Shown here in pieces: positions 36,051 through 54,891 of a stretch of 64,000 nt of DNA (within the stretch, counting starts at the first letter, position 1; the number at the start of each line of letters is the position of its first letter). The stretch spans positions 190,744 through 254,743 of IMG/VR virus record IMGVR_UViG_3300007770_001284, one strand, 5' to 3'. The notes under the pieces were generated by a model. That model saw nothing but the letters and a program-made list of their open reading frames with translations. It made no database searches and was not told the DNA's origin. The position numbers and the translations under genes were made by a program.

Positions 36051-36080
36051 TGCTATTCCATCGCACACATACGCTTTTCA

Positions 36081-36116: not shown

Positions 36117-37349
36117 TTATAGTCCACCAAGTAATGTAATAGCAATCAACCCTGGAATTCCTTCTTTTACATAGATGCCAGAGAAAACAGTATTTGCTCG
36201 ACCACCGACGTATGAGAATGCTGACTCAAGTCGTCTTCCGACTTCGGGGTCCGAAGCCATGTTATTGTCCACCACCAGCAGCAGTGCACCTGTTTCTGTG
36301 TTTCCGCTTGGTGTAGGACAAGGAGATGAACGCAAGCACCCCTGATAGACAAGAGAACCAAGGTCGTTCCTATTAACATCTCTAACAACTGTGCTTCCGA
36401 TAACCATACGACCTGCTGTGCTCAAGCAGCGCTCCAAGTCCTTTGTATCAAATGTCTGGATTTCTGTATGCTCTGACGCAAGCTTAAAGACTTGCCACAA
36501 AAGCTTAGCAAAGTTTTTATTGGCTACTGGCATCATGTTGAGAAGACCAGTCCTACCACGGAGCAACTGTAATTGTCTCTCGTTGTCTATTACAATATGG
36601 GGGCTAGTGCCTACATCACTCATAAGTGATTGATAATTCGACTTGATAGTGGGGTTGAGAAGCTCTTGAGCTGTTGGTTTCGTTACGATATAGACAACAC
36701 GACCTGCTGCTTCAATTGACTGTAGGTAGCGGCTTAATGAAGAATCTAATTCGTGGCACGCGCTACCGGTTCCTCCACCACCACCGGCGATAACGAATAA
36801 CCAATCGACCTGTCCGATTCGTGTTCGAGCAGCATCTTCAACAAATGCGCTGTTTTCTGCTAACACTTTTTTTCCAAGTGTGATATCTTTTCCAACACCA
36901 TCCGCTCCGGGAACAAGAACAAAATGTTGCGGATCAACTCCGCCCGGCTGGTCCTTTTCAGTTGTGTTAACAAGTATTGTCTTACTGAATCCGAGATCGA
37001 GAAATGCTTTTGCAATTTTCCCTCCCCCTCCGCCAACGCCTATGAATCCACAATTAATAGCTGAAACAGCTGTGTTGTCGGGGAGTAGTCTTTCGTCTGT
37101 GGCCGCGGGATCATCATCGTAGGCCATTACGAAATCAAAATCATCTCCCGCATCTGGGATGTTGATATGTGCATCGTCCGTAGGATTATCGCTTGTTTGC
37201 GCTTGCTCTTCGATAGCTTTGTCATTGTCGGGCATAATTTTTTTTAACCTCTCAGAAATAATAGTGTCTGGGTGTGGCTTTATTTTCTTGTTCTCTTCTA
37301 TGTTGGTGGGTTGTTCTAGTCCAACGCGGTTCCAAGATGTAGAAGCCAT
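36117..37349 (-). CDS. Tubulin/FtsZ-family GTPase (PhuZ/TubZ-like)
   Basis: IGVGGGGGKI, VNT, GVGKD, IAGGGGGTGS; about 95-aa N-terminal extension. Confidence 0.88.
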   Translation of the reverse strand: MASTSWNRVGLEQPTNIEENKKIKPHPDTIISERLKKIMPDNDKAIEEQAQTSDNPTDDAHINIPDAGDDFDFVMAYDDDPAATDERLLPDNTAVSAINCGFIGVGGGGGKIAKAFLDLGFSKTILVNTTEKDQPGGVDPQHFVLVPGADGVGKDITLGKKVLAENSAFVEDAARTRIGQVDWLFVIAGGGGGTGSACHELDSSLSRYLQSIEAAGRVVYIVTKPTAQELLNPTIKSNYQSLMSDVGTSPHIVIDNERQLQLLRGRTGLLNMMPVANKNFAKLLWQVFKLASEHTEIQTFDTKDLERCLSTAGRMVIGSTVVRDVNRNDLGSLVYQGCLRSSPCPTPSGNTETGALLLVVDNNMASDPEVGRRLESAFSYVGGRANTVFSGIYVKEGIPGLIAITLLGGL

Positions 37350-37421: not shown

Positions 37422-37766
37422 TGGTGGAGGCGGCGGGAGTCGAACCCGCGTCCAAAGCAGTTTAGGGATCAAGTCATTCACAGGTTTAGACAGTTTTTCT
37501 AAACTGACAAATCTTCCGCTGGTGAAACCCCCCTGCTCGCGGATACAAGGTTCGAGCATTATTTTATTTCAGTGATGCTACTTCACTTAGCCTAAATTGG
37601 ATAGATGGTTTTAGGCAACCACCCGATTACGCAGCTAGGGCGTATTCGAAGTGATTGTTGTTATTGGCAACTATCTTTTTTGAAACCGCGATTTAGGTCT
37701 GCTGTTTCCTGAGACCACCTGCACTCTTATACTCCTTTGCTACCCTGTCGAAGCCATATCGCCCCC
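37422..37766 (-). ncRNA. ssrA: tmRNA; tag (A)ANNNNHFEYALAA encoded at 37627..37668
   Basis: 5' GGGGGCG...TTCGACAGG; 3' GGGTTCGACTCCCGCCGCCTCCACCA; G3-U70 pair; tag ends ALAA-stop. Confidence 0.95.
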
Positions 37767-37819: not shown

Positions 37820-38575
37820 ATGCCTATACGAAAAATAGTTGCATTTGATTTTGATGACACGCTGGCGGTTACTGAATCGCGAATCGGTGTTCAGCGCCCA
37901 GAGGCAGCTGGAACGTCCTCTCCCACGTTAGAAGACTGGTTGCTAGACCACAATATTCAATATATGGATGTAACGGGTACGGGTGGTAATGAGTTTTATT
38001 GGTTAGATTCTGCAAATTTTGCATTGTATGAAGAGCATGCTGAAGGATTTGAGGATGTGATTGATTACGTTGGGACATCTTCATTTGATGTGAGCAAAGC
38101 TCAAGTGATTACCCCAATGTTAAAAAAGCTGGTTGAAGCAGAATCAGATCCTGATACGCTAGCATTAATCATAACGGCGAGAGCAGGGAAGAAGCAGATG
38201 TACAGTCCGTCTCAGGGAACGTCAGTAAAGCCCTTAAACCGCTCCCAGATCCTTCAGTTCTTAAAAGATAATGGAATCAGCTTTGATGACAGCAGATTAC
38301 ATACAGTGGGTGACCAGGGCTCTAATAGCGCTGCACACAAGGTCAACGTATTGACTGGATATCTAAACAAGTATAAACCAGATGAGTTAATTTTTTATGA
38401 TGATAACGAAAATAATGTAAGGGCAGTTGCTGCATTGTGTAAGCAATTTGCTCCGTCAGTGAAGATATCAGCTTTCCGCGTGGCAGCGGGGTGGATTTCT
38501 TCGGAATCTGGGTGCAATGAAACGGTTAATTTACGCTTGAAAAAGATACTTAGTCGTACAGGCCGCGCTCGTTAG
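37820..38575 (+). CDS. HAD-superfamily phosphatase
   Basis: FDFDDTL, ITAR, K, FYDDNENN. Confidence 0.8.
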   Translation: MPIRKIVAFDFDDTLAVTESRIGVQRPEAAGTSSPTLEDWLLDHNIQYMDVTGTGGNEFYWLDSANFALYEEHAEGFEDVIDYVGTSSFDVSKAQVITPMLKKLVEAESDPDTLALIITARAGKKQMYSPSQGTSVKPLNRSQILQFLKDNGISFDDSRLHTVGDQGSNSAAHKVNVLTGYLNKYKPDELIFYDDNENNVRAVAALCKQFAPSVKISAFRVAAGWISSESGCNETVNLRLKKILSRTGRAR

Positions 38576-38605
38576 ACGTTGGCCGCCCTAATAGGACGTG
38601 CCGGA

Positions 38606-39145
38606 ATGTCATTATTGCGAGAATATATCAAAGAAATTCTTAATGAAAGCATTGAGTTTCGGACGCTTGATTCTCCCCTTAAGTACAGTCGCGCTTCAGA
38701 TATAAAAAGAATAGCACTTTGCGATACATCGGTAGAAGAACCCCACATGGGCCCTACTGGCAAGCCCAAAATAGATGCATACTTCAACCAAAGACAAGAG
38801 ATGGAATATTATGGCGCTTCGGGTCGACGATTAAAGAAACCGAGAAAGGGCCAGCTGGTTCCCGGGGTTTCTGATGCTTGCGTTATTGGATTTTTAGACT
38901 ACCACAAAGAAGGTGTTTCGTCAGGCGGAAATGATATGTGGTACATTGACTATATGAAGACTCGTGGTGATAAAGGTGGCCAAGGGACTGCCAGCATGCT
39001 GATTGATGAATTTTATAACACTGTTGCCAAACCTGGTGACAACGTTAGTTTTGGTAAGATGATGCGGAAAGAGATCGGTCACCTCAAAGATAAGATGGTA
39101 GACAAGTATCCAGAAGTTAGCACTAGAGGAGCAGTGAATTTCTAA
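38606..39145 (+). CDS. Leader-bearing GNAT-like protein
   Basis: MSLLREYIKEILNES; YIDYMKT...GGQGTASML. Confidence 0.6.
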   Translation: MSLLREYIKEILNESIEFRTLDSPLKYSRASDIKRIALCDTSVEEPHMGPTGKPKIDAYFNQRQEMEYYGASGRRLKKPRKGQLVPGVSDACVIGFLDYHKEGVSSGGNDMWYIDYMKTRGDKGGQGTASMLIDEFYNTVAKPGDNVSFGKMMRKEIGHLKDKMVDKYPEVSTRGAVNF

Positions 39146-39405
39146 TGAAAATCACAAGACGACAGATTAGACAGATCATTGCTGAAGAGCTTGCGCTCGA
39201 TCTTGAGGTTGGAGACATCATACTAACCGGTCGCTTCAAGAACAAGCGAACGGTGGTCAAGAAACTTGGTACCGATGACCTGGGCCAACCGACTGTGAAT
39301 GGCATGAAAGTGTTAGCGTTCAGGATTGAAAAATTGATGCCGAAAGAGAAGTGGAGCAAGAAGACAATCGCCGAACTTGAGAAGGAAGAGGAAGATAAGA
39401 AATGA
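39145..39405 (+). CDS. Leader-bearing small protein
   Basis: MKITRRQIRQIIAEE; LEVGDIILTGRFKNK. Confidence 0.65.
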   Translation: MKITRRQIRQIIAEELALDLEVGDIILTGRFKNKRTVVKKLGTDDLGQPTVNGMKVLAFRIEKLMPKEKWSKKTIAELEKEEEDKK

Positions 39406-40082
39406 GGTTAACTGAATCTGCTTTACGACATTTGATACGCAGAACGTTGTTGGAAAAGAGCTGGGCTGATTTCCAGGCACCCAAGGGAAAGACCATCCCT
39501 ATCGATCCTGCAGATTTTGCAACCAATACTCCGAACGTGCGTGACTTGGATGAAGAAATATTTGACCTGATACAAGTTGCATATCAAGATGTCGAGCTAA
39601 CGCCGGCGTCGGAAGAGGGCCCAGCGACATTTGGCAACATCAAAATTCAAAGTCCAGGGGATCTACCCTATAAATACACTATCATGAAGGGAGCCGACAT
39701 AGACGAAGATCCTGACCCCGATTATTTTCGCGGCGGAAAGATGGTCAAGGGCCGATTCAAGCTGGGCATCGTCGGCCATGATGGAACTCGTGCTGCAATC
39801 GATCGCTATCTCGAAGAGACAGCAGCAGATCTAAGAGCTGGTGCAATTGCAGAGATGTCAGGGAAGATTGCACATATCATGATCACTCGACATGGAGTCC
39901 CTGCAGTTCAGACAGAGGAGGCTGTGGAAGCGATGCTAGGTAAAGAGGTGGACTGGACAGGCCGACATCCTAACGAGAAATATGCGAATAGGTACGGGCC
40001 TGATTATGAGGCTTGGTATTGTCGTGGTATCTCGGGGGCATGCGCCGGAGACCACATGAAGATTCTACTGGGCGGCGGATGA
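39402..40082 (+). CDS. Leader-bearing hypothetical protein
   Basis: MRLTESALRHLIRRTLLEK; DIDEDPDPD, GHDGT. Confidence 0.65.
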   Translation: MRLTESALRHLIRRTLLEKSWADFQAPKGKTIPIDPADFATNTPNVRDLDEEIFDLIQVAYQDVELTPASEEGPATFGNIKIQSPGDLPYKYTIMKGADIDEDPDPDYFRGGKMVKGRFKLGIVGHDGTRAAIDRYLEETAADLRAGAIAEMSGKIAHIMITRHGVPAVQTEEAVEAMLGKEVDWTGRHPNEKYANRYGPDYEAWYCRGISGACAGDHMKILLGGG

Positions 40083-40549
40083 TGCAATTATTGAACGAAT
40101 ATGCAAGAGAGATTATGACATCGCAGGTTGACTCCGGATGTATTGATCTACGTGTACGTGGCTTTAAAGTTAACGCTGAGCTGGCAACAACGACAGAAGC
40201 AAGAAATCGAGGCTTGATGCATAGACAATCGATGAATGAGGATGATGGTATGTTGTTCGTTTTCCCTGACACCGACTATCGTTCATTTTGGATGGAGAAT
40301 ACCTTCATCCCGTTGTCGATTGCTTATCTAACAGAAGCTGGAAAAATTATTAATATAGAGCGGATGCATCCTTTTAACCGAACTTCTGTAAGGTCAACAG
40401 AGCCAGCAAAGTATGCGCTAGAAATGAATGCTGGCTGGTTTAAGAAGCGAGGCGTTCAAGTTGGTGATGTTGTAAGTGGTATTTCTTCCATGAACGAGTC
40501 TATGCTCCGCGAGTACGTAAGAACTTTGCTAATAGAACAGAGCGGGTAA
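40079..40549 (+). CDS. DUF192-family protein with leader-like motifs at both ends
   Basis: RNRGLMHR, GMLFVF, FWMENTFIPLSIAY, YALEMNAGWF. Confidence 0.85.
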   Translation: MMQLLNEYAREIMTSQVDSGCIDLRVRGFKVNAELATTTEARNRGLMHRQSMNEDDGMLFVFPDTDYRSFWMENTFIPLSIAYLTEAGKIINIERMHPFNRTSVRSTEPAKYALEMNAGWFKKRGVQVGDVVSGISSMNESMLREYVRTLLIEQSG

Positions 40550-40552
40550 TTC

Positions 40553-42190
40553 ATGACTCTCCTCCGCGAATGCGTAAAAGAAATGCTTGTAGAAAGTAAT
40601 GTACTTGCTACAGGAATGTGTTTTCCTTTCGCATACCAGAAAGCTGAAGAGTGGTTTAACGATCACTTTACGAAGGCTAAGCCGGGCCGCGGCCCAAAGA
40701 GGCACCCGAACTTAAATGACAAGAGTAAGTTCAAAGTTGTTCATGGTACAGTAACAGATAAGTGGAAGAAGCCGCCGAAGCCAGTTGTTCATGGGTGGGT
40801 TGAAATGGGAGATCTAGTCTTTGATGATCAGACCAGAATAACAAAACCAAATGGTATTGAAAAAGAATTCTATTACGATATGTATCAGCCTGAGGTGTAC
40901 AAGGAGTTCACTGCTGAAGAGGCTATACTCAATTGTGCGATGAAGGGTGGTGAAGGGCCTTGGGATGATGATCTCTATGTGATGATGCAGGACCGTGATG
41001 CATGGATGAATGAAGCGCTACTTCGAGAAGCTACCGCGATTCGTGAGCCGTTAAATCTCTCTGTACCAGAAGACTTGAAAGATATCCACCGTCGTATGCA
41101 GCAAGCGGGAAAAGAATTATATGTCGTTGGAGGTGCTGTTCGTGATGCGTTGATGGGGAAGACTCCCAAAGATTACGATGTCGCTACGAATGCAACTCCA
41201 GACCAGGTGATTCGAATTTTACAGAGCCATGGCAGACTCAGGCTTGACTTAACAGGAAAAGCTTTTGGTGTGGTGAGAGTGAAGACCCCCGACAAAAATG
41301 AATACGAGATTGCAACATTTAGAGAAGATATAGGCCCCGGTCGTCGACCTGAGGGCGTGGCATTCACCAGTATAGAGGGTGATGTAAAAAGACGCGATCT
41401 GACAGTGAACGCGTTGTTCTATGATATGAATACAGGCGAGGTCGTTGATTACGTTGGTGGAATAAAAGACATTGAAGACGGCGTAATTCGAGCCGTTGGA
41501 GATCCAGCCCAACGTTTTGATGAAGACAGGCTACGTATTTTACGTACTATTCGATTCGCAGGCCGAATGGGCGCAGAGCTGGATCCTGCTACAAAGGCTG
41601 CAATTCTTAAAGACAATAGTTTGACTGATGTTAGCCCAGAGCGTATAAGGGAAGAATTTTTGAACGGTGTTAGTTCTGCTGCTAACCTTGATCACTTTAT
41701 AAACCTGATAACAGAACTGGGATTGTTTGAGCAGATATTCCCGGGTCTTCAAATTACACCGCTTTCTGGTACAGCCAGCAATCCGTATGTACAGGTTGCA
41801 GCATTGCTGGGTGATAATGCATCACAAGATACGCAGCAGGTGCTGGAAGAAATGCGTTATTCTCGTAAGCAGATTATTCTTATTAATTTTTTGATTCGAT
41901 TGAAAAGCATCACAAAAGAAACTGCGCCCCAATTAAAGAAGGACTTCATTCGACACAAGATTTCTATTAATGATATTGAGGATTTCGCAGCTGTCACCCC
42001 TCAGCTTTCTGATCGTGTTGTTCAGGGCTTTTTGAAATTTGTTTCAAATCCGCCAGCCAGCAATCCACAAGAGCTAATGGCTCAAGGCCTTGCAGGTGAA
42101 GCAATAGGACAAGCTATGAAGGCAGCTGAGGTTGATGCATATTCGAGTTTGGTTGGCGAGTTAAGGTCGTACATACGGGAGCTATTATGA
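40553..42190 (+). CDS. Fusion: Cys-His-Asp domain plus CCA-adding/poly(A) polymerase family nucleotidyltransferase
   Basis: VGGAVRD, KDYDVAT, RRDLTVNA, EDRLRILRTIRF; N-domain GMCF/HGWVE/FDD. Confidence 0.88.
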   Translation: MTLLRECVKEMLVESNVLATGMCFPFAYQKAEEWFNDHFTKAKPGRGPKRHPNLNDKSKFKVVHGTVTDKWKKPPKPVVHGWVEMGDLVFDDQTRITKPNGIEKEFYYDMYQPEVYKEFTAEEAILNCAMKGGEGPWDDDLYVMMQDRDAWMNEALLREATAIREPLNLSVPEDLKDIHRRMQQAGKELYVVGGAVRDALMGKTPKDYDVATNATPDQVIRILQSHGRLRLDLTGKAFGVVRVKTPDKNEYEIATFREDIGPGRRPEGVAFTSIEGDVKRRDLTVNALFYDMNTGEVVDYVGGIKDIEDGVIRAVGDPAQRFDEDRLRILRTIRFAGRMGAELDPATKAAILKDNSLTDVSPERIREEFLNGVSSAANLDHFINLITELGLFEQIFPGLQITPLSGTASNPYVQVAALLGDNASQDTQQVLEEMRYSRKQIILINFLIRLKSITKETAPQLKKDFIRHKISINDIEDFAAVTPQLSDRVVQGFLKFVSNPPASNPQELMAQGLAGEAIGQAMKAAEVDAYSSLVGELRSYIRELL

Positions 42191-43806
42191 AGATGTATCA
42201 TGCAACCACTCCAGCAAATGCTCGTGATATATTAGCGAACGGTCTTGAGGTTGATGCTACCGGCGAAGCGGGCTATACCCAGGTGCACGCTCAATGGGCA
42301 GACCAGCTTTATGGTATGCGGCCTGTTTTTCTATCTGTTAAAAAGGGAAAATTCGCCGGGATTCCCTTGTTGGTCGACACAGAGGGATTATCCCTTGTAG
42401 CGGATTTAGCAGCTGTCGCAGACCTGGGAGACGAGCCCCCCAGCTTGGATGGAGATGAACTTATTTGGTGGGATGGAATCGGTCCAGAAGAATTATCCCC
42501 TATAGCAAGTGACGGCGCGGTCAATATAGAAAATTTGCTTGTTCCCGGAAGTAGGGAAGCCAAGTTAGCAATTGCAGTTACGGGAACAGCGGCAGTGTTG
42601 GAAGATATTCCGCCTGATAGAATCAAGATTGCTTCATATAATGAAGCTTTCCTACGCGAGTATGTAAGAGAGGTGTTGAGCGAAGAAGTGGAACGCCAAA
42701 CGGTGGGAAGCGTTTTAGACGCTTTAGGAGCGATAAAGGGCGTCGATGATGAAGCCCAGCGCAAAGAGCGTATGAAAAAGCTTGCTAAGAAAATTGGTTG
42801 GGAAATGGTCAAATTCATTCCTGTGGTTGGAAAAGGAATCAAGATGGCCAAGACAATCGGTGATATTTACAAATTAGCAAAAGACACTCCCGATGATCTG
42901 GCCACGAAAGACAACGTCGTTCTAGACATGCTGGATGTTGATGATAAGTATCAGCAAATGTTGGATGATCGGCTTGAAGCTGCATTCGATGAGGTCGTGA
43001 TTCCTTGGCTCGAAAGCCTTCCACCAGATGCTCCACTCCCTGACATGAATAATAAATTGGAGGCTTGGGTTAATCAAAATTTCGATGAGCGAGGAATCCA
43101 CGGCGCAGCCGGGGGTGTACCAGCTAGTTCATCTCCTGTAATGAAGCAAGAAAATGTCGAGTTATCGTTGCGTCAGTACGTAAGGACAATGTTGGAGGCC
43201 GGTGAACTTGGTCGGCAAATATTTTCTGATAGGGCTCCGCTGGGACGTCATATGGGATCCGAAAGAGACACAGAGCTAGAGGGAGAAATTTGGACGGCAT
43301 TATGGGGTCACCTGCAAGGCCTTAGTTCAAAAGTGCCTACAAACTTGCTAGATGCGATGGTAAGTTTTTCCAAAGATCCAGCTTATAACGACGTTTTCAT
43401 ACTACATACGAGTGGCGACGCCTACCGCGGCATGGAAGTTTCACAAGAATACTTGGATGAACACGCGCCTGGCTGGAAAGAAGCAACATGGCCAACATCG
43501 AAACTTCACTGGCAGTGGTCTGATGTTATCCCGGTTGATTTCGAATATCAAAACCGGAATGAATCAAGAACAGTGTCTTCATGGACTCCATCAAGAGACG
43601 TGGCCGAGCAATTCGGTCGAGCCGGACACGGTATGGTGGGAGTAGTTTTAATCGCAGATTCGGCAACGAATACGTTTCTTGACTTGAAGGAATTGTACAG
43701 ATTCGATCGTCTAGACGACTTTCATTGGGAAGAGGAGATCGTCGGATTTGGTTCCGTTCGAGTTAAGGGAATTAAAATCTTGAAGAAACTCGGGGGGCTC
43801 GGATGA
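42187..43806 (+). CDS. Multidomain protein: H-type ART-like, helical module and R-S-E ADP-ribosyltransferase
   Basis: MYHAT/VFLS; AYRG, SSWT, EEE; two internal LREYVRE-type linkers. Confidence 0.7.
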   Translation: MKMYHATTPANARDILANGLEVDATGEAGYTQVHAQWADQLYGMRPVFLSVKKGKFAGIPLLVDTEGLSLVADLAAVADLGDEPPSLDGDELIWWDGIGPEELSPIASDGAVNIENLLVPGSREAKLAIAVTGTAAVLEDIPPDRIKIASYNEAFLREYVREVLSEEVERQTVGSVLDALGAIKGVDDEAQRKERMKKLAKKIGWEMVKFIPVVGKGIKMAKTIGDIYKLAKDTPDDLATKDNVVLDMLDVDDKYQQMLDDRLEAAFDEVVIPWLESLPPDAPLPDMNNKLEAWVNQNFDERGIHGAAGGVPASSSPVMKQENVELSLRQYVRTMLEAGELGRQIFSDRAPLGRHMGSERDTELEGEIWTALWGHLQGLSSKVPTNLLDAMVSFSKDPAYNDVFILHTSGDAYRGMEVSQEYLDEHAPGWKEATWPTSKLHWQWSDVIPVDFEYQNRNESRTVSSWTPSRDVAEQFGRAGHGMVGVVLIADSATNTFLDLKELYRFDRLDDFHWEEEIVGFGSVRVKGIKILKKLGGLG

Positions 43807-45611
43807 GCTTGCTTCGAGAATATGTTAACGTCCCTCCAGAGGAAGAACTCCACCCAAGTCAGATGAAGACTGTCGGTGAGATCTTGGATCTTATCGAACG
43901 TATCCAAGAAGAAACAGACGAAGCCGGCCGTCGGGTGCGTAGTGCAAATGTCGGGATTGAATTCATAAAGATCGCCATGGGGGAGATACCACTCGTTGGT
44001 GGTGCGCTTGGTGCCGCAGATGGATTATTTGCCATGTACCAAGCGGGGAAGAATGAGGAACACACCTGGGCCGAGCTGGAAGAGTATCCCATTCTGGCTC
44101 GGATGAAGATGCACCCTTCTTTGGCCAAACACCTCGATCCTGTAACACTGAAAGAAATTGATAAAGCATATCAGGGCTATCTTCAGGGTCTTGGTCGCGA
44201 GACGCTAGTCAGCGAAATCACAGATATCGATAATTTTACGCATGATTGGATTATGGGTGATACAGACAGCAAGCTTAGCGTGGAGCTCCTACGTGAGTAC
44301 GTAAGAGAACAATTTCTACTTGAAAGAGAGGAAGCAGAAGCGTCCCTGCTTTCAGGGGTGAGTGACTTTATAGAGACTCGTCATTATGATGACGTGTTAG
44401 ATGCTGCGTTTAAACGCATAGCCCCTGGTTTAGTTCGTCATGTCATGGAGCAAGAAATCAACGAGGATGTTGCTGAATTTCTTGATGGCGCAATAGAGGG
44501 TCGGTGGGAGAAACAAAAAGGGTGGTCTTTTGAAGATCCAAGTCCAAAACAGTTGGGTCACTCTGAGGATTCTGCCGATTACATATTGGGGTACTCATGG
44601 GGCTGGAATAATGCAGACTCGTGGGAAGGTAATCGATTGCCGACCCAAGCCAGGAAAGAAGCAGTTGAGGCGCAGATCGCAGAATTTGAAGATCAAATAT
44701 CTGAGCAGATGGTCATTGCGGCGCTGGAAACTGCCAATGAAAAGGTTAACCCCGTTAAGCTCATCAAAAAGGCAATTGGTGCAATTCGTAGTGCAGTTCG
44801 GGAAGAGGGTCTTTCTGGTGGCCTCAAAAAGGGCTTGCCTATCGCGATAGGAATTATTGTAGGGGAGGCACTCGATAATTTTATTATACCCATGGCATTC
44901 TTTTCGATGACCGGCATTCCCATCCCTCCGCTTCCGATTGGAGTGGGGGAAATCATTAATCCCGTAGTGATCAGTATGGTCGGTGCCGATATAGAGTCAG
45001 ACGAACTAGTTGATGAGCTAGGGTGGTACGAGGAAGAGTACGGAGAGGCATCTTCGCTGGGTCCTCGAGAGACGAACGAGTTACGTGCGTATATACGAGA
45101 AGCGTTACTTACAGAGTATTGGCCTGCCCGTACAGAGGGCAAGAAAAATGTCTGGCGTGGCATGAAGATCAAGATGTCACCAGCTATTTTGGCTTCAAAG
45201 GTCCGTCAGTACATTAAGACTGGCGAAGAGAAAGGAATTACGCAGCAAGAATTGATAAGATTTTTGCTTGGCCGTCTTGAGGGCGAAAGTACGGGTGCAT
45301 CATGGTCGCTCAGCTTTGATGTTGCTGTTAGTTTTGCAGATGCCTGGGGAGCAACAAACCGTGGCGCCGAACTCCACGTCATATTTCAAGCCACGGTCGA
45401 TGAAGAAGCTGGATACGATCCTCAGGCTGCAGGCGAAGAGCCCGGCTTGTTTTACGATGAGGCAGAAGTAAGGTTTAAGCCTGGCGCTGAGATACCTCTC
45501 ACTGGAATTTACGTCTTTATCAAGTCTAAGGATCAGTGGGCCAAGCAAAGGACTCAGTTCCGGCCTCTAATGATAAAGGCAGAAGACAATCCGATGATGG
45601 TAAAGGCATGA
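43803..45611 (+). CDS. Multidomain protein: helical module, unknown module and R-S-E ADP-ribosyltransferase
   Basis: VWRG, ASWSLSFDVAVSF, EAE; three leader motifs. Confidence 0.7.
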   Translation: MSLLREYVNVPPEEELHPSQMKTVGEILDLIERIQEETDEAGRRVRSANVGIEFIKIAMGEIPLVGGALGAADGLFAMYQAGKNEEHTWAELEEYPILARMKMHPSLAKHLDPVTLKEIDKAYQGYLQGLGRETLVSEITDIDNFTHDWIMGDTDSKLSVELLREYVREQFLLEREEAEASLLSGVSDFIETRHYDDVLDAAFKRIAPGLVRHVMEQEINEDVAEFLDGAIEGRWEKQKGWSFEDPSPKQLGHSEDSADYILGYSWGWNNADSWEGNRLPTQARKEAVEAQIAEFEDQISEQMVIAALETANEKVNPVKLIKKAIGAIRSAVREEGLSGGLKKGLPIAIGIIVGEALDNFIIPMAFFSMTGIPIPPLPIGVGEIINPVVISMVGADIESDELVDELGWYEEEYGEASSLGPRETNELRAYIREALLTEYWPARTEGKKNVWRGMKIKMSPAILASKVRQYIKTGEEKGITQQELIRFLLGRLEGESTGASWSLSFDVAVSFADAWGATNRGAELHVIFQATVDEEAGYDPQAAGEEPGLFYDEAEVRFKPGAEIPLTGIYVFIKSKDQWAKQRTQFRPLMIKAEDNPMMVKA

Positions 45612-46159
45612 ACCTCCTCCGTGAATGCATAGAAGAGCTGCTCCGTGAGTCTCATTTTCCATTGACAGGTGGAGAGAAGGTGCGCATCCACCACAGCCGA
45701 CAAGACACTAGAGACGGTAAAGAACCACAGATCAGTGGTTTTTCACAGAGGGTTGGCTACAAGCCCAGTGGTCTGTGGTATGAATGCAAAGACGGTAGCT
45801 CGATAGACTGGCTGGAATTTTGTAGGACGGGCCTAACGGACGGTGCAAGTAGATATGATAGCGCATATAACGTTGTCTTGAATGATTATGAAATCTTGTT
45901 CATAACAGATAATCATGATTTTAAGAAATTTGAGAAGATGTACGGCGTTCCCAATAGCTACGGGGACATCAAGATTGACTGGCCAAAGGTCGCAAGTCAT
46001 TATGACGGTATTGAGATCTGTCCCTATCTATGGAAAATGCGACCGGACTCGGACTGGTATTACGGGTGGGACGTAGCGTCAGGGTGCGTGTGGAACGCGT
46101 CTGGAATAAAAGAACTTATAAGTGCAGAGGAGGGTTGTGAAGATGAATCCGCTGCGTGA
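45608..46159 (+). CDS. Leader-bearing protein, possible ART-like fold
   Basis: MNLLRECIEELLRES; IHHS, KPSGLWY, WDVASGCVW. Confidence 0.55.
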   Translation: MNLLRECIEELLRESHFPLTGGEKVRIHHSRQDTRDGKEPQISGFSQRVGYKPSGLWYECKDGSSIDWLEFCRTGLTDGASRYDSAYNVVLNDYEILFITDNHDFKKFEKMYGVPNSYGDIKIDWPKVASHYDGIEICPYLWKMRPDSDWYYGWDVASGCVWNASGIKELISAEEGCEDESAA

Positions 46160-46625
46160 GTATATAAGAGAGATCTTGACCGAAGACGCTGACTCTTCTG
46201 GAGTCACTATCAGAGTACAAAATTATGGAAATGGAGTCGCAGCTGCTATAATGATGAGCGGAATGAGAATAGGCTCAGCTACAGCTCGCGAAGTTCTTAA
46301 GTACGAGCACTGTACAGAAGATGTAGAGAAACTCAAAGCTCAGGGTTATGATTACGATAATCCGAAATTTCCGACCCTGGGGCCGACGCTATATGCGATA
46401 GGAGAATCTCATGTGGATGAAGCTTTTAGGGGATTTGGATACGGTAAGAAGTTATACAAGGCAATAATTGAAGAGATTGGTAAGCATGTTGGTAATCGTG
46501 GTGCCTTTGTCGGCGCTGATGAGTGTGCAGCGGGTTCTACTTCCGGCACCGCGCAGCGAGTCTGGAAGTCGGTGGGTCGTGATTACCCATCATCTGGTAA
46601 TGTAGTTTATGTGGGACCAAAATGA
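46143..46625 (+). CDS. Leader-bearing GNAT acetyltransferase
   Basis: MNPLREYIREILTED; VDEAFRGFGYGKKLY. Confidence 0.75.
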   Translation: MNPLREYIREILTEDADSSGVTIRVQNYGNGVAAAIMMSGMRIGSATAREVLKYEHCTEDVEKLKAQGYDYDNPKFPTLGPTLYAIGESHVDEAFRGFGYGKKLYKAIIEEIGKHVGNRGAFVGADECAAGSTSGTAQRVWKSVGRDYPSSGNVVYVGPK

Positions 46626-47266
46626 ACCTGCTTCGCGAATATATCCGAGCTCTGCTCACCGAAGCTGCCAAGACCGTGGAAGATCTTCCTGAGGGTGCTT
46701 TCGTGACAATACTAAAAAGGTACGGCGGTTCATCAGTGTTCGTATACATCGGCGATGAGAAGGGAAATCGGTGGAGGACTAGAGAGGAGCACGGGGAGAG
46801 GTATGATAATTCCATACACGCAGGAATAGAAATTGCCAAGCCAAGACCGTCAGAGACCGGACCTTGTGGCGATGCATTCGTGGTGGAAGGTTCTGGAGCA
46901 ACTCACGGTTGGGGTCCGTTAGTATATGATGTTGCAATTGAGTACGCATCGCTTGACGGATCTGGCGGCTTAATTTCAGATAGAAGTTCGGTTTCTCCTT
47001 ATGCTCGACGTGTATGGGAATACTATATGAACAACCGACCGGACGTCACAGCGCATCAATTAGATGACATGAAAGATACGCTAACTCCAGAATGGGAAGA
47101 TAACTGCCAGCAGTGGATAGCCATGAAGACAACGGTACCAGCATTCACCGCAGAAAAATCTGATGATACTCGCTGGGTTGATTCACCGCTCAGTAAGAGA
47201 TACACGGCACCTCCCAAAACCATCGATGCGCTTCGTGCAGCTGGAAAACTGGTGGAGATTGAATAA
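46622..47266 (+). CDS. Leader-bearing GNAT-like protein
   Basis: MNLLREYIRALLTEA; GWGPLVY, SPYARRVW. Confidence 0.6.
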   Translation: MNLLREYIRALLTEAAKTVEDLPEGAFVTILKRYGGSSVFVYIGDEKGNRWRTREEHGERYDNSIHAGIEIAKPRPSETGPCGDAFVVEGSGATHGWGPLVYDVAIEYASLDGSGGLISDRSSVSPYARRVWEYYMNNRPDVTAHQLDDMKDTLTPEWEDNCQQWIAMKTTVPAFTAEKSDDTRWVDSPLSKRYTAPPKTIDALRAAGKLVEIE

Positions 47267-47730
47267 TGAACCTTCTCCGTGAATACATAAGCGAGCTTTT
47301 GACAGAGATAAATCTTGGTCAGGGCTATGGGATAGAATATACAGCATTTGTTCTGGACGACGCGTCACATCAGAAGCTAGCCGCTTTTGCTCCCGAAGGC
47401 TGGAAAGTCTTTGCTCATCACATGACGATTATTAATCCACCCAACCAGAAATTACGGTTACCGTCGCAATGGCTTGACCAAGACCTTTGCGTGAGAGTCG
47501 TGGGAATTGCACAATCGGCTCAGGTCATGACTGCGCTAGTTGATCTGGAAGGATTACCTCTTCCGATGAAGGGACCAGAATATCCTCACATCACTATTGC
47601 TACGAATCCAGCAGAGGGTGGCAAGCCTGCGATGTCTAATTGGAAGTTTAAGCCAGTTATCGATAAGCATAATTTTGAGGCTATTACCTCAATCGTTGTG
47701 TGCGGCAGAATAGAGGAAATATTAAGGTGA
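47266..47730 (+). CDS. Leader-bearing 2H phosphoesterase
   Basis: MNLLREYISELLTE; HHMTI and PHITI (two HxT motifs). Confidence 0.75.
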   Translation: MNLLREYISELLTEINLGQGYGIEYTAFVLDDASHQKLAAFAPEGWKVFAHHMTIINPPNQKLRLPSQWLDQDLCVRVVGIAQSAQVMTALVDLEGLPLPMKGPEYPHITIATNPAEGGKPAMSNWKFKPVIDKHNFEAITSIVVCGRIEEILR

Positions 47731-48401
47731 GCTTACTTCGCGAATACATCAGTGAGGTGCTGCAAGTGACTGCTCGAGTGCAACCCGAGTCCCAGATATT
47801 CTGTGACATGGACGGCGTTTTGGTAAATTTTGAAGATATGATTGTGAGATTTATCAACGGTCTTTTGGGCGGTGGCATCTCTCCAGGGATTGAAATTACG
47901 AAGGGTTACGAGAAGAGGCTAGCAAAAGTACGCGGAGAGCTCGGTCCAGATTGGCGCGCAAAGGGTCGTCCTGATTTAGATATTAAGTCGGTTCGAAATT
48001 TTATGATGGGTGCTGTTGGAGCAAATCCTGGTCCTATATTTGCTGAGATGAAGCCACATGCTGACGCTCTGGAAAAACTTTGGCCATTTCTGACGGGGAC
48101 TGGTCGGACTGTGAATATACTGACTGCTGAAATTAGGGCGAGAGAGGGAGCTGTTATGACAACGGCCGAAGGGAAGGAATTGTGGATACACAGGTGGCTT
48201 AAGCCTCAACCTTCTCAAATTATTATGTCACCAGCCAAACAGAAAGCCAGGTATGCAACGACCAACGGCATTCCCAACATACTTATTGATGATAAACTTA
48301 CGACCGTCGACAGCTGGAATGCCGCCGGCGGAATTGGTATCTGGCATCTGCCGGGCGGAAGCGTAGACACTGTGGAACAGCTAAAGGAATTGGGCGTATG
48401 A
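47727..48401 (+). CDS. Leader-bearing HAD 5'(3')-nucleotidase-like protein
   Basis: GTG-SLLREYISEVL; FCDMDGVL, ILT, K, LIDDK. Confidence 0.8.
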   Translation: MSLLREYISEVLQVTARVQPESQIFCDMDGVLVNFEDMIVRFINGLLGGGISPGIEITKGYEKRLAKVRGELGPDWRAKGRPDLDIKSVRNFMMGAVGANPGPIFAEMKPHADALEKLWPFLTGTGRTVNILTAEIRAREGAVMTTAEGKELWIHRWLKPQPSQIIMSPAKQKARYATTNGIPNILIDDKLTTVDSWNAAGGIGIWHLPGGSVDTVEQLKELGV

Positions 48402-50521
48402 AAACTCAGTTGCACATATACGATTTTGATGCAACTCTTTTCATGAGCCCGATGCATCCCGACGATTGGGAAGGTCACATCGGTCATTGGTACGATACGC
48501 TACAATCGTTGTCACCGCCCTGTGTAATCGATCCTCCCAATGATTTGTGGATAGGCAGCACAGTGTCTAGTGCACATAGCAGTATAGCCGACCCCAATGT
48601 ATATGCGATTTTAATGACAGGTCGCACAAGAAAACCTGAATTAGTTGGTCGGATAGCAGAGCTTCTTGCTATGGGAGGGCTAACGTTTGAAGAGATCTTG
48701 CTTAAGCCCACTGGAGATGTTAGGACTCTGCCGTGGAAATCTTCAATGATTGAAAAGCTAGCTGAAAAATTGCCTGACTTACAAGAAGTACATATCTGGG
48801 AAGATAGAGCAGACCATCTACAGGCTTTTGTTAAGCTTGTAGAATCTATGGGACTCACAGCGGTACCGCACTTTGTTAATGTTGTGCTCAATGCGCCCTG
48901 CGATTTAGGGAGTGTACAGCCCGACGTCGACCCTGGCGCTGTGATGGATCTCCCAGTGTTGAGTAAGCAGAATGAAAATTTAGTAAGACGATACATCAAG
49001 CTTTGTTTGGAAAAAACCGTCCGAAGCCAGAAAGACAAACGTGTCCTGTATCACATTAATCGCTTTCGTCCCGCTCGTCCCCAGCCGAAAATGTCGTATT
49101 TTCAAGAGTGGGACCCGGATGCAATTGACCCGGACACGCATGAAAGAACAGGCGACTATGTAGACGTTCCAGGAACCGACAACTGGCAACGACACTGGCT
49201 TGATAGTCCAGTTAAGTCCGGCGTTTTCTTAACCCCCAACCCAATTGATATAGCGATCAATCACGGTAGATCTGGTCACGTATACGCCTATAAAGTACCA
49301 CAGTGGGTTATAGCTAAATCAGGTGGTTTACATCGATATGATCATGGTTCCGAAGTACTAGTTCCTGAAGATGTCTGGAACGAGGCGGGTAAAGAGATCG
49401 AGTTCATGGGTAAGAGTATGGACAAGGAAGAGTTGTGGGATGAGATGATGCCTTCCCTGTATGGACGTGGCCACCACCGGCCAGCAACAAAACCATCCTG
49501 GATGTCCGGTGAAGAATTAAAGCAATGGAAAAAGGGTCAAAGTAAATTTAATCTCTCTGGCTTAAGAGCAACACGACATCCCGAAGATGTAATCAAAATG
49601 CTTACGTCAGATGAACAGCGAAAGGCGATTGAAGCGATTGAAGCGAAGAAAGAGGATATTCCTGGCTTTATTGAAAAAGGCCCAAGAGACAAAAAGGGAA
49701 TTGTGGTTCCGCCATTTGGACAACTATTAGACAAGAAAGACGAAGAGCTCTTGGCTTTGCTGAACAAACACCTGAACGAAGATATATTACGTGGGTACGT
49801 GAGGGCTCTATTGATCGAAAAATCATTAACTGGCCGGAAGCTTGAGAAGGTCGCAACATTGATAGCTGATGAAGTTATCGAATATCTTTTAGATGAAGAC
49901 CTCAGGGGTGCGTTTGCGGCACAGGGTCCGCTTGGGTTTCAAGTAGAAGTTGAGTTACCAGAAGCAGTGTTGTGGCTGCGAAATGTGTATGTGAAAATGG
50001 AGCCAGCAGATATTTTTAACAGCGATGCAAGCTATGAATTTGATCTAGATGCGACTGATGAGCAGCGAGAAGAATCAGATATTCGAATTAATCTTCAAAT
50101 GCCAACAGACTACTCAGACGAAGAAGTAGAAAAGCTTAAAGTAGAAATTGAAGCTGATATTCGCCACGAGCTAGAACATTCAGGACAGTCCACAGATGTC
50201 CTAATGGATGTACAGAGGAACGTCCCGGATTCTGAGATATGGAAATCCTTAGATCGTGCTGATTATTACTACACAAGTGAGGCTGAGGTGCCCTCATACG
50301 TGTCCAGCCTTGTTCTTAAATCTAAGAGGCATGAGTCGCATGCAGCGGATGAAATTGATGAAGACCTCAATAAGATCTACGCTACAGGACTAAGCAAGGG
50401 CTACTCTGAAGAAGAGTTGTCCCCCCTGATGACAAAGATTAGAGACACTTGGCAGTATTATTTAATGTCTCGGTGGCCTGAGCAAGAATGGCCGATTGAA
50501 TTTAGGCCAGAAAATGGGTAA
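48398..50521 (+). CDS. Multidomain protein: HAD phosphatase, ART-like domain and zincin metallopeptidase
   Basis: YDFDATL/WEDR; LYH/VFLT; RHELEH; linkers NENLVRRYIKLCLE and NEDILRGYVRALLIE. Confidence 0.72.
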   Translation: MKTQLHIYDFDATLFMSPMHPDDWEGHIGHWYDTLQSLSPPCVIDPPNDLWIGSTVSSAHSSIADPNVYAILMTGRTRKPELVGRIAELLAMGGLTFEEILLKPTGDVRTLPWKSSMIEKLAEKLPDLQEVHIWEDRADHLQAFVKLVESMGLTAVPHFVNVVLNAPCDLGSVQPDVDPGAVMDLPVLSKQNENLVRRYIKLCLEKTVRSQKDKRVLYHINRFRPARPQPKMSYFQEWDPDAIDPDTHERTGDYVDVPGTDNWQRHWLDSPVKSGVFLTPNPIDIAINHGRSGHVYAYKVPQWVIAKSGGLHRYDHGSEVLVPEDVWNEAGKEIEFMGKSMDKEELWDEMMPSLYGRGHHRPATKPSWMSGEELKQWKKGQSKFNLSGLRATRHPEDVIKMLTSDEQRKAIEAIEAKKEDIPGFIEKGPRDKKGIVVPPFGQLLDKKDEELLALLNKHLNEDILRGYVRALLIEKSLTGRKLEKVATLIADEVIEYLLDEDLRGAFAAQGPLGFQVEVELPEAVLWLRNVYVKMEPADIFNSDASYEFDLDATDEQREESDIRINLQMPTDYSDEEVEKLKVEIEADIRHELEHSGQSTDVLMDVQRNVPDSEIWKSLDRADYYYTSEAEVPSYVSSLVLKSKRHESHAADEIDEDLNKIYATGLSKGYSEEELSPLMTKIRDTWQYYLMSRWPEQEWPIEFRPENG

Positions 50522-51332
50522 CTTCGAAAAATTTAAGGTGCTTGGGTATATCCGTCCAGCTGAGGTATTTTTTACGTTAGGCGAATGGCGTACCGTTGTG
50601 GAAGAATTAATAGAGCTTCAGTCCCGTGGATTCGACACGAGGTCAGGTAAAATCAGCTGTAAACATATGTCTTTTTGCACACAAGAAGATATGGATCGAT
50701 TCGTACAACTTATTGCAAAATTCTGGGGCTATCAGCTCACAGTAGAGGTGGATAGATATGACCTCCTGACAAGCAAAAATGTTCTTGATTTCATAGAGGA
50801 CTTCGTGAACCATCGCTTTTGGGGGTTCGAGAATGAATTTAGCCATTACTTCCCAGACGTCTCTAAATTGAAGTTTGCATACTTTTATTCTCGTGGGGAT
50901 ATCGAACCATATGTGATGTTGGACGATGAATACACGACGCAGCTTTATGGTACCCTGGAAAATCCAGCAGATCTATGGCACTTTACAAGCCCGGATGGGT
51001 TAGATCGTTTGTCCCGCGCGATAGAAGCTGGAGAGCAATTTGATATTTCAACTTTCACTGTAGCTGAGCGGATGTTTTTCAGAAAGACTTCCACTCTTAC
51101 TGTTAGGTTAGTAGGAAATGTAAGGGCTGCGTTCCGTAGCGATATAAAGTCTTTGGCTCTGGATAACGGCAGACGAGCGTGCAACATGTATCGCCTTGAG
51201 TATCCCGGTAGGGCAGCGAATAATATTTGCTATGATTTAGACAAGTGCTTAGATCCAGAGGGCGTACAGACTGGATTATGGAATGAGTATATTGCAACGC
51301 CGCTCGAGATTATAAGCGTCGAATCATCTTAA
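50514..51332 (+). CDS. Hypothetical protein
   Basis: 272 aa ORF; LWHFT motif of unclear meaning. Confidence 0.6.
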   Translation: MGNFEKFKVLGYIRPAEVFFTLGEWRTVVEELIELQSRGFDTRSGKISCKHMSFCTQEDMDRFVQLIAKFWGYQLTVEVDRYDLLTSKNVLDFIEDFVNHRFWGFENEFSHYFPDVSKLKFAYFYSRGDIEPYVMLDDEYTTQLYGTLENPADLWHFTSPDGLDRLSRAIEAGEQFDISTFTVAERMFFRKTSTLTVRLVGNVRAAFRSDIKSLALDNGRRACNMYRLEYPGRAANNICYDLDKCLDPEGVQTGLWNEYIATPLEIISVESS

Positions 51333-53292: not shown

Positions 53293-53607
53293 ATGTATGT
53301 AAGAGATGCAAACGTTGGTGATGTGATTCGTGTTGTCGGTGATAATAAGGGTGTTCGACAAAGCATTTTTCGTATATCACAAGAAGAAAGAGACGAAGCG
53401 CGTAAGCATGGTTTTATGATTGGATTTGTTCGTCATTTCTGGAAAGGTAATCCTGACAAGCCATATGACATGGTATATCTTGGTCCAGTAAGCACAAGGA
53501 TTCCCGTGGCTGGCCTTTTTAAACATCATTTATTTTTGACTCCAGATGGTACGTACGGGATAGAGGGATATGACTTTCGATATTTGGAGAAAATTACAGG
53601 GCGATAG
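53293..53607 (+). CDS. Hypothetical protein
   Basis: MYVRDANVGD...; its stop codon lies inside the tRNA. Confidence 0.55.
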   Translation: MYVRDANVGDVIRVVGDNKGVRQSIFRISQEERDEARKHGFMIGFVRHFWKGNPDKPYDMVYLGPVSTRIPVAGLFKHHLFLTPDGTYGIEGYDFRYLEKITGR

Positions 53608-53675
53608 CTCAATTTGGTCAGAGCAACGGTCTCATAAACCGTGGGTTCCGGGTTCAAGTCCCGGTCGCCCTACCA
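53598..53675 (+). tRNA. tRNA with CAT anticodon (probable Ile2, alternatively Met)
   Basis: Full cloverleaf, ACGGT-CTCATAA-ACCGT, encoded CCA; adjacent to tilS. Confidence 0.9.
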
Positions 53676-53682
53676 CTTAAAA

Positions 53683-54306: not shown

Positions 54307-54328
54307 ATTTATCTTCAAGGGAGAAACA

Positions 54329-54520: not shown

Positions 54521-54532
54521 GAGTGAAGAAAA

Positions 54533-54679: not shown

Positions 54680-54691
54680 TTGCCTAATTTG

Positions 54692-54882: not shown

Positions 54883-54891
54883 CCTTGGTAC

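Follow-up and report, generated by a model that had tools for sequence, protein, structure and literature searches.

In bacteriophage T4, the prohead protease gp21 cuts after the motif (L/I)-x-E (PMC9026906), and a capsid-targeting sequence (CTS) in the form of a propeptide of 10-20 residues ending in L/I-x-E marks proteins for the head (PMC9026906, PMC5694885). The CTS of the internal protein (IP) IPIII consists of its first 10 residues (PMC9026906, PMC3012670, PMC9958956, PMC5694885), and Asp in place of the P1 Glu stops processing but not targeting (PMC9026906). The CTSs of IPI, IPII, IPIII and Alt are removed by gp21 (Mullaney and Black 1996, as cited in PMC9026906, PMC3012670 and PMC9958956), and the T-even phages possess diverse internal proteins with only the CTS in common (PMC9026906, PMC3012670). 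Here we describe a 64,000-nucleotide stretch of DNA (positions 190,744-254,743 of IMG/VR virus record IMGVR_UViG_3300007770_001284, hereafter the window), in which a 14-residue leader peptide, M-(N/K/S)-L-L-R-E-Y-I-R-E-L-L-x-E, is repeated on many enzymes and multi-domain polyproteins. We consider this leader, hereafter the tag, to be probably a T4-CTS-like propeptide that targets proteins to the prohead, and put the probability of this reading at about 60%.

Like the phage studied here, phiKZ, 201phi2-1 and SPN3US are jumbo phages, for which many non-structural proteins are proposed to be loaded into the head (PMC5694885, PMC10052503, PMC9026906). Further likenesses to the ejection and inner-body proteins of these giant phages are a gp21-homologous protease (theirs cutting after Glu), multiple sites per propeptide, and paralogues with conserved N-termini. 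However, their cleavage motif is (S/A/G)-x-E, whereas the sites in the tag and in the capsid propeptide here are L/I-x-E and LxE; their propeptides mostly exceed 100 residues and share no single short tag; and the head genes of the present phage match T4 families (Gp23, Portal_T4, Peptidase_S77) directly.

Polyvalent proteins are multi-domain proteins, with ADP-ribosyltransferase (ART), zincin-like and phosphoesterase domains among others, that are proposed to be packaged and delivered, and to have their domains freed by built-in zincins (PMC5512222); we found no capsid-targeting sequence or inter-domain linker motif described in the same paper. They combine two to fifteen effector domains, and are resembled by five proteins of the window, of 539, 545, 602, 636 and 707 amino acids, which have two or three modules each. 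An Atlas lead also connects the 707-residue protein to LPD23, a domain linked to polyvalent proteins. In contrast to polyvalent proteins, most modules here are encoded by small genes of their own and carry individual tags. The cargo-loading peptides of encapsulins are likewise short, are found on diverse enzymes and target these to an HK97-fold shell, but they are usually C-terminal, uncleaved and of other sequences, and their shell is non-viral, so that the resemblance is one of analogy only.

The comparison with T4 extends to several features of the locus. As for the CTS, we find a short, putative N-terminal propeptide on unrelated proteins, ending in L/I-x-E, in a genome with a gp20/gp21/gp23-type head module. 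The cargo genes lie in variable arrays outside the head module, as do those of T4, which are also next to tRNA genes; the combinations of tag and domain are shuffled, as at the IP loci of T-even phages, which are hypervariable and carry the CTS (PMC3012670, PMC9026906); a candidate ART-like cargo parallels T4 Alt; and the cleavage motif is under-represented in mature cargo, as in T4. In contrast, the tag has 14 residues and three in-phase sites, as opposed to the 10 residues and one site of the T4 CTS; it is present in at least 17 copies in the window and on approximately 58 cargo families in the clade, as opposed to a handful in T4; and its cargoes are mostly enzymes, whereas those of T4 are small basic proteins. 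Unlike the T4 CTS, the tag additionally occurs between the domains of polyproteins and at two C-termini, is accompanied by a second tag class, and is known from sequence alone.

Thus, the principle of the tag is already known from T4, and what is new here is its sequence, the three-site design, the second class, cargoes that are numerous and enzymatic, the inter-domain use, and the occurrence in an abundant, uncultured jumbo clade of distant T4 relatives ('far-T4' phages). In the literature that we searched, which was incomplete, we found no description of the motif, the only text matches being the surname Ullrey and one unrelated peptide, and no paper linking a capsid-targeting sequence with marine metagenomes.

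A repeated leader peptide under selection

We searched the six reading frames of the 64 kb for copies of the tag, using a regular-expression scan and then a 14-column hidden Markov model (HMM) built from the copies. We identified 17 sites of the principal form (class 1), scoring 12.1-23.7 bits, all on the plus strand and all in the coding frame; 16 of these lie within 38606-49819 and the remaining one at 63067. The next-best match in the window scored 5.8 bits. Run on 100 kb from an AT-rich phage that is unrelated, the HMM gave one spurious match of 12.5 bits, and the weakest copies therefore depend on their context. Nine class-1 copies begin at the initiator Met (encoded by GTG at 47727). Two degenerate internal copies, at 41015-41047 (NEALLREATAIRE) and 48977-49012 (NENLVRRYIKLCLE), fall below the HMM threshold. 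A first-pass annotation of the sequence had reported about 20 copies, which agrees with the 17 strong copies taken together with the two degenerate ones and the two variant tags that lie within its range, and the nine N-terminal positions that it listed were all correct (the open reading frame (ORF) at 40079 starts MMQLL).

The copies share a peptide and not a nucleotide sequence. The Leu that is invariant in the tag is encoded by all six of its codons and both Arg positions by CGN and AGR codons; 66% of the codon pairs that encode the same residue differ, and the mean nucleotide identity among copies is 53%. Synonymous codons vary freely, and therefore selection acts at the level of the peptide, as the first-pass annotation had also concluded from the differences at synonymous sites.

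For 89 N-terminal tags collected from related phages, the sequence logo reads M1, N/K/S2, L3, L4, R5, E6, Y7, I8, R9, E10, L11, L12, x13, E14. Positions 3-12 and E14 are highly conserved, and the information content is at background from position 15. The tag can thus be written L-[L-R-E]-Y-[I-R-E]-L-[L-x-E], with three in-phase (L/I)-x-E sites, LRE6, IRE10 and LxE14, the last of which (L12-x-E14) is present in 72 of the 89. Conservation at positions 3-12 is inflated, because the sets were gathered with the motif itself; E14 lies outside the DNA pattern used for collection. In an AlphaFold2 model of the 214-residue family, the tag is helical (residues 3-12), and the domain is confidently predicted (predicted template modelling score 0.81). 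Residues 1-11 have a predicted local distance difference test score below 50 and are therefore not packed on the domain, so that the model presents the tag as an amphipathic helix free of its domain.

A second class of tag, MK..(R)QL..II.EEL, was identified at the N-termini encoded at 967, 36050 (minus strand) and 39145; the N-terminus at 39402 has a looser form of it. The variant beginning MK(I/L)T that the first-pass annotation had noted at these four positions is real at the first three, and recurs in related contigs as MKIT(K/R)RQLR(R/K)II(K/R)EE(L/I) at the N-termini of proteins in L009, L030 (twice) and L034 (L-numbers are labels of the related contigs and stretches that we collected).

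The tag in related marine phages

Relatives were gathered with a back-translated DNA pattern for LLREYIRExL. In IMG/VR, 32 stretches match this pattern, on contigs of up to 293 kb, mostly with several matches per contig at gene-length spacing. In Joint Genome Institute (JGI) metagenomes there are at least 120 matching stretches, and we counted 394 tag copies in 622 kb among the matches listed. The HMM check that the first-pass annotation had suggested recovers the 17 copies in the window, and the DNA pattern finds the tag widespread in related marine contigs. A first set of relatives comprised 108 non-redundant tagged proteins, with the 89 N-terminal tags described above; in a second set, from metagenomes, the first tag was at the Met in 336 of 392 cases. 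In these related contigs, the tag is accordingly at Met1 in approximately 86-90% of cases. The cargo families of the clade number about 58, most of them without a known function. For the tagged 214-residue protein, homologues in metagenomes number at least 500, and many of them come from marine surveys. Their first 14 residues (MNLLREYIRELLTE) are nearly invariant, against an overall identity of about 48%.

A T4-type head module with a gp21-family protease

A T4-type head module lies approximately 45-51 kb before the window on the same genome. Its gene order is terminase, Portal_T4, a 284-residue protein, Peptidase_S77, five small proteins, a 582-residue acidic scaffold-like protein and Gp23, followed by gp13, two sheath genes and gp19; PF03420, PF07230 and PF07068 are all present. 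An independent scan located a gp21 homologue on the window's own contig, within 138,955-151,572 (L054). The S77 protease (L049:5154-5774) is 28% identical to T4 gp21 (BLASTP E 4e-21), and the blocks GE(L/C)(N/D)HP and SSRG(L/V)GS align, so that the conserved His and Ser blocks of gp21 are present in the phage protease. The capsid protein matches T4 gp23 with a BLASTP E of 9e-30. The same S77 protease was found on 11 tag-bearing IMG/VR contigs.

Candidate cleavage sites of the same kind occur in the head proteins themselves. In the propeptide of the capsid protein, 48 relatives share a conserved LTE12, LxE28, LLE52 and (V/I)L(R/K)E61, the last of which precedes a variable Gly-rich linker, at a distance from the conserved IVRR block equal to that of the T4 gp23 cut. 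LRE and LTE are common to the tag and the conserved capsid-propeptide sites. The protease begins MAELKLLTE9, in parallel to the MNEPQLLIE9 of T4 (the 'LIE-9' site; PMC9026906, PMC9958956). Tag-like N-termini, picked out by eye, were also considered in the 284-residue (L049:4307-5161, QLSEYISSALVE) and a 143-residue (L049:6321-6752, TLVKECLFEILLE) head protein, and were rejected as noise at -0.5 to 1.4 bits.

Avoidance of the cleavage motif in tagged proteins

We set beforehand the expectation that the mature parts of proteins sharing a compartment with the protease should avoid (L/I)-x-E. Tags were masked, and observed counts were compared with those expected from composition, weighting each family once and bootstrapping the confidence intervals (CI). 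In the first set, 34 cargo families were compared with 104 control families, made up of untagged ORFs at the same loci. The observed-to-expected ratio (O/E) for (L/I)-x-E was 0.74 in cargo and 1.17 in controls, a ratio of 0.63 (CI 0.48-0.79), and (L/I)-x-D was enriched in cargo (ratio 1.26, CI 1.10-1.45). Cargo and controls did not differ for V.E, [LI].Q, [LI].K, E.[LI] or [FYW].E, and the deficit was confined to spacing i+2. Among 276 residue pairs in this set, L.E was the most depleted, I.E the third most depleted and L.D the most enriched.

The ratio was 0.75 (CI 0.61-0.90) in the whole metagenome set, and 0.73 (CI 0.59-0.88) for the combined sets (58 cargo against 183 control families), in which I.E ranked second, L.E fifth and L.D last (284th) for depletion among 284 pairs. 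T4 gives a similar picture, the IPs and Alt having an O/E of 0.70 against 1.33 for non-virion T4 enzymes, although on small numbers. We regard the avoidance of (L/I)-x-E as moderate but specific support for the suggestion that the tagged proteins share a compartment with the protease.

A candidate prohead-targeting propeptide and its alternatives

If the tag is a prohead-targeting propeptide, its amphipathic helix would dock tagged enzymes on the scaffold or core during prohead assembly, and the gp21-family (S77) protease would cut after at least one of LRE6, IRE10 and LxE14, freeing the mature enzyme in the head. The internal tags of fusion proteins would then be cut linkers, and the polyproteins would be split into single domains within the head. 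The load would comprise a CCA-adding enzyme, HAD phosphatases or nucleotidases, 2H, DUF192, ART-like and zincin-like modules and many proteins of no assigned function, and, ejected together with the DNA, would be active from the onset of infection. We infer docking, cleavage, presence in the virion, injection and the host roles of the enzymes as parts of this scheme, to which the host-takeover and anti-defence roles that the first-pass annotation had proposed for the cargo may also belong. A wider proposal, that in a clade of marine jumbo phages one 14-residue label loads dozens of enzymes, tRNA/RNA-repair and ADP-ribosylating ones included, into the capsid, many of them as polyproteins cut at internal labels, is more tentative, and we would place it slightly below even odds.

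The proposal of a CTS-like head tag, made in the first-pass annotation, gains from the gp21-family protease, the 14-residue anatomy ending in LxE and the avoidance of (L/I)-x-E, which are independent of one another and indirect. The tag has no detectable similarity in sequence to the T4 CTS. The tag HMM misses the N-termini of ipI, ipII, ipIII and alt in a six-frame search of 68 kb of T4, with MKTYQEFIAE scoring at noise. We accordingly rejected homology of the tag to the T4 CTS; as the T4 CTS is undetected by the tag profile, the analogy is one of function and context.

This lack of sequence similarity is one of several observations that weigh against a prohead-targeting propeptide. Whereas the T4 CTS is N-terminal only, six strong copies of the tag stand inside proteins, where domains meet, and another two at the C-terminus (40496 and 42152). 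No head-module protein carries the tag by HMM, and the tag arrays, those of related contigs included, adjoin metabolic genes and not head or structural genes. The LLTE at the N-terminus of the protease is LLT(D/N/S) in more distant relatives, and we therefore give little weight to its parallel with the T4 LIE site. The avoidance of (L/I)-x-E is modest: in the window alone the ratio is 0.86, and for the families new to the second set it is 0.83 (CI 0.64-1.05, not significant), with no excess of L-x-D.

We also found no shared late-promoter signal. The T4 late promoter (TATAAATA) is absent from the head module itself, and is thus uninformative as a marker of late expression; a scan for sigma-70 promoters and terminators remained at background. 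A CCA-adding enzyme and nucleotidases would serve equally well as ordinary cytoplasmic enzymes. Finally, no cultured member of the clade is known, and no relatives were found among GenBank phages by megablast of the region or by tblastn of the 602- and 214-residue proteins and a 24-residue tag peptide; Flavobacterium phage immuto, a distant cultured relative, has no tag in its first 100 kb by HMM scan.

The alternative that survives best, although we judge it rather unlikely, is that the tag docks on a cytoplasmic partner, either a scaffold, comparable to a cellulosome or AKAP, that would hold RNA-repair and nucleotide enzymes together in one complex, or the phage GroEL, ClpP or tubulin-like systems, with no cleavage needed. 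An amphipathic 12-residue helix that is unpacked on its domain would suit such docking, as would cargo enzymes with plausible cytoplasmic roles and modules found both fused and split, suggesting that they work jointly. The phage encodes GroEL, ClpP, a tubulin-like protein and a transfer-messenger RNA (tmRNA), and a T4 precedent for an N-terminus that directs proteins to GroEL appears in the reference list of PMC10052503. However, docking of this kind leaves the sharp conservation boundary at Glu14 unexplained and does not predict the deficit of (L/I)-x-E at i+2 or the excess of L-x-D, and we identified no candidate receptor.

Still more improbable is a polyprotein processing signal for another protease, without a link to the capsid. 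Two enzymes encoded in or beside the array, the HExxH module of the 707-residue protein and a trypsin-like protease (51324-52052), could be proposed for this role; processing by zincins has been put forward as a theme among the polyvalent proteins of phages (PMC5512222), six strong tags stand between domains, and avoidance of the motif in cargo would be expected for any protease of such specificity. Against this, a specificity for (L/I)-x-E is documented for the gp21 family (PMC9026906), of which the genome encodes a member, and the approximately 86-90% of tags at Met1 of single-domain proteins have nothing to separate. Furthermore, the trypsin-like protein has a start that resembles a signal peptide by eye, and cleavage after Glu at L-x-E is not typical of trypsin-fold enzymes.

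A nucleic-acid element, such as a recombination cassette or a translation-initiation or mRNA structure, or else a chance or low-complexity repeat with an incidental peptide, can be dismissed as highly improbable: although tags lie at gene starts, module shuffling breaks at them and T4-type phages shuffle genes at short regulatory cassettes, this reading is contradicted by the codon data (53% nucleotide identity, six Leu codons, 66% of codon pairs differing), by internal and C-terminal copies away from translation starts and by a peptide that is near-invariant across proteins about 48% identical overall. The gap in score also speaks against it, as all 17 copies reach 12 bits or more and no other match exceeds 5.8.

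The sets of proteins that phages inject are known for only a few laboratory phages, and normally need virion proteomics. If the tag is a prohead-targeting propeptide, it would mark injected proteins of uncultured, widespread marine jumbo phages directly in sequence data: the arriving phage would bring a ready-made enzyme toolkit, metagenomes would provide a catalogue of injected effectors, and the 58 or so cargo families would be the first place to look for activities in early host takeover, RNA repair and counter-defence. The CTS principle would then be older and more general than the T-even phages, and would scale from a handful to dozens of proteins, including polyproteins processed in the head. 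Such a tag, being short, transferable and cleavable, could also have practical value in engineering, for loading proteins into phage capsids.

Tagged genes and their domains

The array (37820-51332) consists of densely packed genes, all on the plus strand. Its first gene (37820-38575) is HAD-like (DUF2608 2e-5, weak HAD_SAK_1) and untagged; a related HAD protein is tagged in another contig (L008:597-1142). It is followed by a tagged ORF of 179 residues (38606-39145; tag at 38606-38647, MSLLREYIKEILNE, 22.0 bits), with no Pfam or PHROG match and with tagged orthologues in L002, L011, L021 and L030. An ORF of 86 residues (39145-39405) bears a class-2 tag (MKITRRQIRQIIAEEL, 39145-39192), and an ORF of 226 residues (39402-40082) a loose class-2-like N-terminus (MRLTESALRHLIRRTLLEKS, 39402-39458), the similarity being weak and judged by eye.

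The next two genes are tagged at both ends. A DUF192 protein (40079-40549; PF02643, E 1.4e-32) has an N-terminal tag at 40082-40123 (MQLLNEYAREIMTS, 19.4 bits) and an orphan C-terminal tag at 40496-40537 (ESMLREYVRTLLIE, 18.6 bits), followed by QSG and the stop. The 545-residue protein (40553-42190) is composed of a tag (40553-40594, MTLLRECVKEMLVE, 17.8 bits), an N-domain, the degenerate tag of 41015-41047 (residue 155), a CCA/poly(A)-polymerase-type nucleotidyltransferase that begins immediately after it (PolyA_pol 9.2e-37, PolyA_pol_RNAbd 1.6e-7), and a C-terminal tag shortened by the stop codon (42152-42187, GELRSYIRELL, 12.1 bits); this stop overlaps the next start (ATGA).

The N-terminal tag of the gene that follows the orphan begins 15 nucleotides after it (40496-40594), and the gene after the shortened tag (42152-42190) has no N-terminal tag of its own. 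The two C-terminal tags look like the products of recent gene fission or deletion at tag boundaries. Elsewhere in the clade, we detected no N-terminal tag on DUF192 and CCA-type enzymes (L008:8237-9304, L035:800-2677), and thus the set of tagged enzymes appears to vary between genomes; DUF192 is fused to an extra module in other clade genomes.

Two three-module proteins follow. The 539-residue protein (42187-43806) contains internal tags at residues 153 (42643-42684, EAFLREYVREVLSE, 16.6 bits) and 325 (43159-43200, ELSLRQYVRTMLEA, 13.3 bits). In its homologues, which number only 11, the C-terminal module always has its own tag and is fused to varying upstream modules, with breakpoints at the tags. 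The unit of evolution is therefore the tag plus its domain, and these comparisons indicate that such cassettes are shuffled, fused and split at tags. The 602-residue protein (43803-45611) carries tags at residues 1 (43803-43844, MSLLREYVNVPPEE, 15.2 bits, degenerate in its second half), 160 (44280-44321, VELLREYVREQFLL, 14.9 bits) and 424 (45072-45113, TNELRAYIREALLT, 13.8 bits). Its C-terminal module (residues 438-602) is ART-like as a lead only, the nearest named Atlas clusters being DRAT, ADPrib_exo_Tox, Mod_ADP_RT and NarE; phmmer found no match to two ART-like modules among PDB sequences.

Five smaller tagged genes are next in the array. The 183-residue protein (45608-46159; tag at 45608-45649, MNLLRECIEELLRE, 16.9 bits) has its cargo at residues 45-173, and actinophage homologues align from residue 45 only, without the tag region; cargo domains thus exist untagged in unrelated phages, such as these. 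The 160-residue protein (46143-46625; tag at 46143-46184, MNPLREYIREILTE, 23.7 bits) gives a weak GNAT signal (Acetyltransf_1, E 6e-4, under the Pfam cut-off). The 214-residue protein (46622-47266; tag at 46622-46663, 22.4 bits) belongs to the large metagenomic family described above, and a fold search with its cargo returned only weak GNAT-like matches (E of at least 0.3). The 154-residue protein (47266-47730; tag at 47266-47307, MNLLREYISELLTE, 22.4 bits) may be 2H-phosphoesterase-like, a lead that comes from HxTx motifs at residues 52 and 108; a faint match to 2_5_RNA_ligase2 was obtained for a tagged L022 protein that belongs to a different family. The 224-residue protein with the GTG start (47727-48401; tag at 47727-47768, (V/M)SLLREYISEVLQV, 17.2 bits) is HAD 5'-nucleotidase-like (phrog_2643, 5'-3' deoxyribonucleotidase, 6.4e-16).

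The 707-residue protein (48398-50521) comprises a HAD_SAK_1 domain (1.7e-15), the degenerate tag of 48977-49012 (residue 194), a middle module, a tag (49778-49819, EDILRGYVRALLIE, 13.1 bits) and an HExxH module. The last of these has HELEH at residue 590 and weak Atlas leads to SprT, M48 and LPD23, and a relative has a sub-threshold SprT-like match; we treat its zincin-like nature as a lead only. Beyond the range of the first-pass annotation, a 636-residue protein (61846-63756) has an internal tag (63067-63108, ESLLRGYVRDLIYE, 14.7 bits) before a cytidylyltransferase-like domain (Citrate_ly_lig and Pantoate_ligase matches at residues 431-471).

Class-2 tags are also found away from the array, on an ORF of 278 residues (967-1803, plus strand), which starts MKRISRKYLSKIIKEEL (967-1017), and on a Zeta-toxin/AAA_33-type P-loop kinase on the minus strand (35169-36068; Zeta_toxin 1.6e-8). 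The tag of the kinase (36050-35994, MKKLNVSKQQLQYIIREEL) is followed by a weak class-1 copy (35978-35940, ITLREAIRELLSE, 5.8 bits).

The firm cargo assignments are thus DUF192, the CCA/poly(A) polymerase head domain, HAD_SAK_1 and the 5'-nucleotidase-type HAD, together with the Zeta/AAA_33 kinase on the minus strand. From the cargo list of the first-pass annotation, DUF192, CCA, HAD and kinase are upheld by profile, whereas GNAT is sub-threshold, ART and zincin are weak Atlas leads and 2H is by motif. The majority of tagged proteins have no family match. HAD_SAK_1, the CCA-type nucleotidyltransferase, the 2H-like module and the P-loop kinase occur together, with tRNA and tmRNA genes nearby; we saw no RNA ligase in the array.

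Genomic setting

The window is the final 64 kb of a 254,743-bp contig (JGI Ga0105015_1000011; 100% identity). It codes for a DnaE-type polymerase (Pol III alpha subunit, 2660-6460), thymidylate synthase, GroEL (27833-29416, plus strand; phrog_5725, 1e-132), a tubulin-like protein, a tmRNA and five tRNAs. Upstream, we extended the genome by exact protein look-ups on overlapping contigs, with overlaps 99.98-100% identical. This walk revealed a replication module of ClpP, ribonucleotide reductase, DnaB, RecA-like, gp32-like and PolA genes and, beyond it, three very large ORFs, a T4-type baseplate protein, a gp19 tube protein and two sheath paralogues. By capsid protein, the nearest isolates are distant T4-like phages: Flavobacterium phage immuto (47%), Microcystis phage Mel-JY01, RM378 and XacN1. 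The gene content and these matches indicate that the source is a far-T4 jumbo marine phage.

The tmRNA gene (37422-37766, minus strand; Rfam 124 bits; ARAGORN tag peptide ANNNNHFEYALAA) lies immediately upstream of the tag array, in divergent orientation, and the tRNA genes (Met, Lys, Asn, Arg, Leu) are located within 53598-63977. The tubulin/FtsZ-like protein (36117-37349, minus strand) matches Pfam Tubulin under the cut-off (E 7e-5) and has Gly-rich motifs, GGGGGK and GGGGGTGS, by eye; no chimallin-like gene and no virion RNA polymerase were seen in the parts of the genome examined. Immuto, the cultured relative, also encodes GroES and GroEL.

Two further proteases are encoded in this genome. 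A full-length ClpP-family gene (L042:4312-4914) lies approximately 4.7 kb before the window start, among NifU/Fe-S assembly, thioesterase, amidase and glutamine-synthetase-like genes; it is distant from the head module, and is therefore probably not the prohead protease. The trypsin-like serine protease (51324-52052; Trypsin_2 9e-18) is on the minus strand just past the array, opposite to it.

The sheath paralogues (L047:6824-13084) are in tandem and unusually long, at 1047 and 1027 residues, and the three very large ORFs (1552, 1132 and 1011 residues), located after the sheath, tube and baseplate genes, have no family match. A short family-A polymerase gene (407 residues; L044:2538-3761) stands beside an RNase T-like exonuclease, and gp32-like and RecA/UvsX-like genes were identified in the same genome. 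The window additionally codes for an MT-A70 methyltransferase (12415-13143), an Fe/Mn superoxide dismutase (15385-16098) and a MotA/ExbB-like protein (55750-56250; precomputed Pfam in L036).

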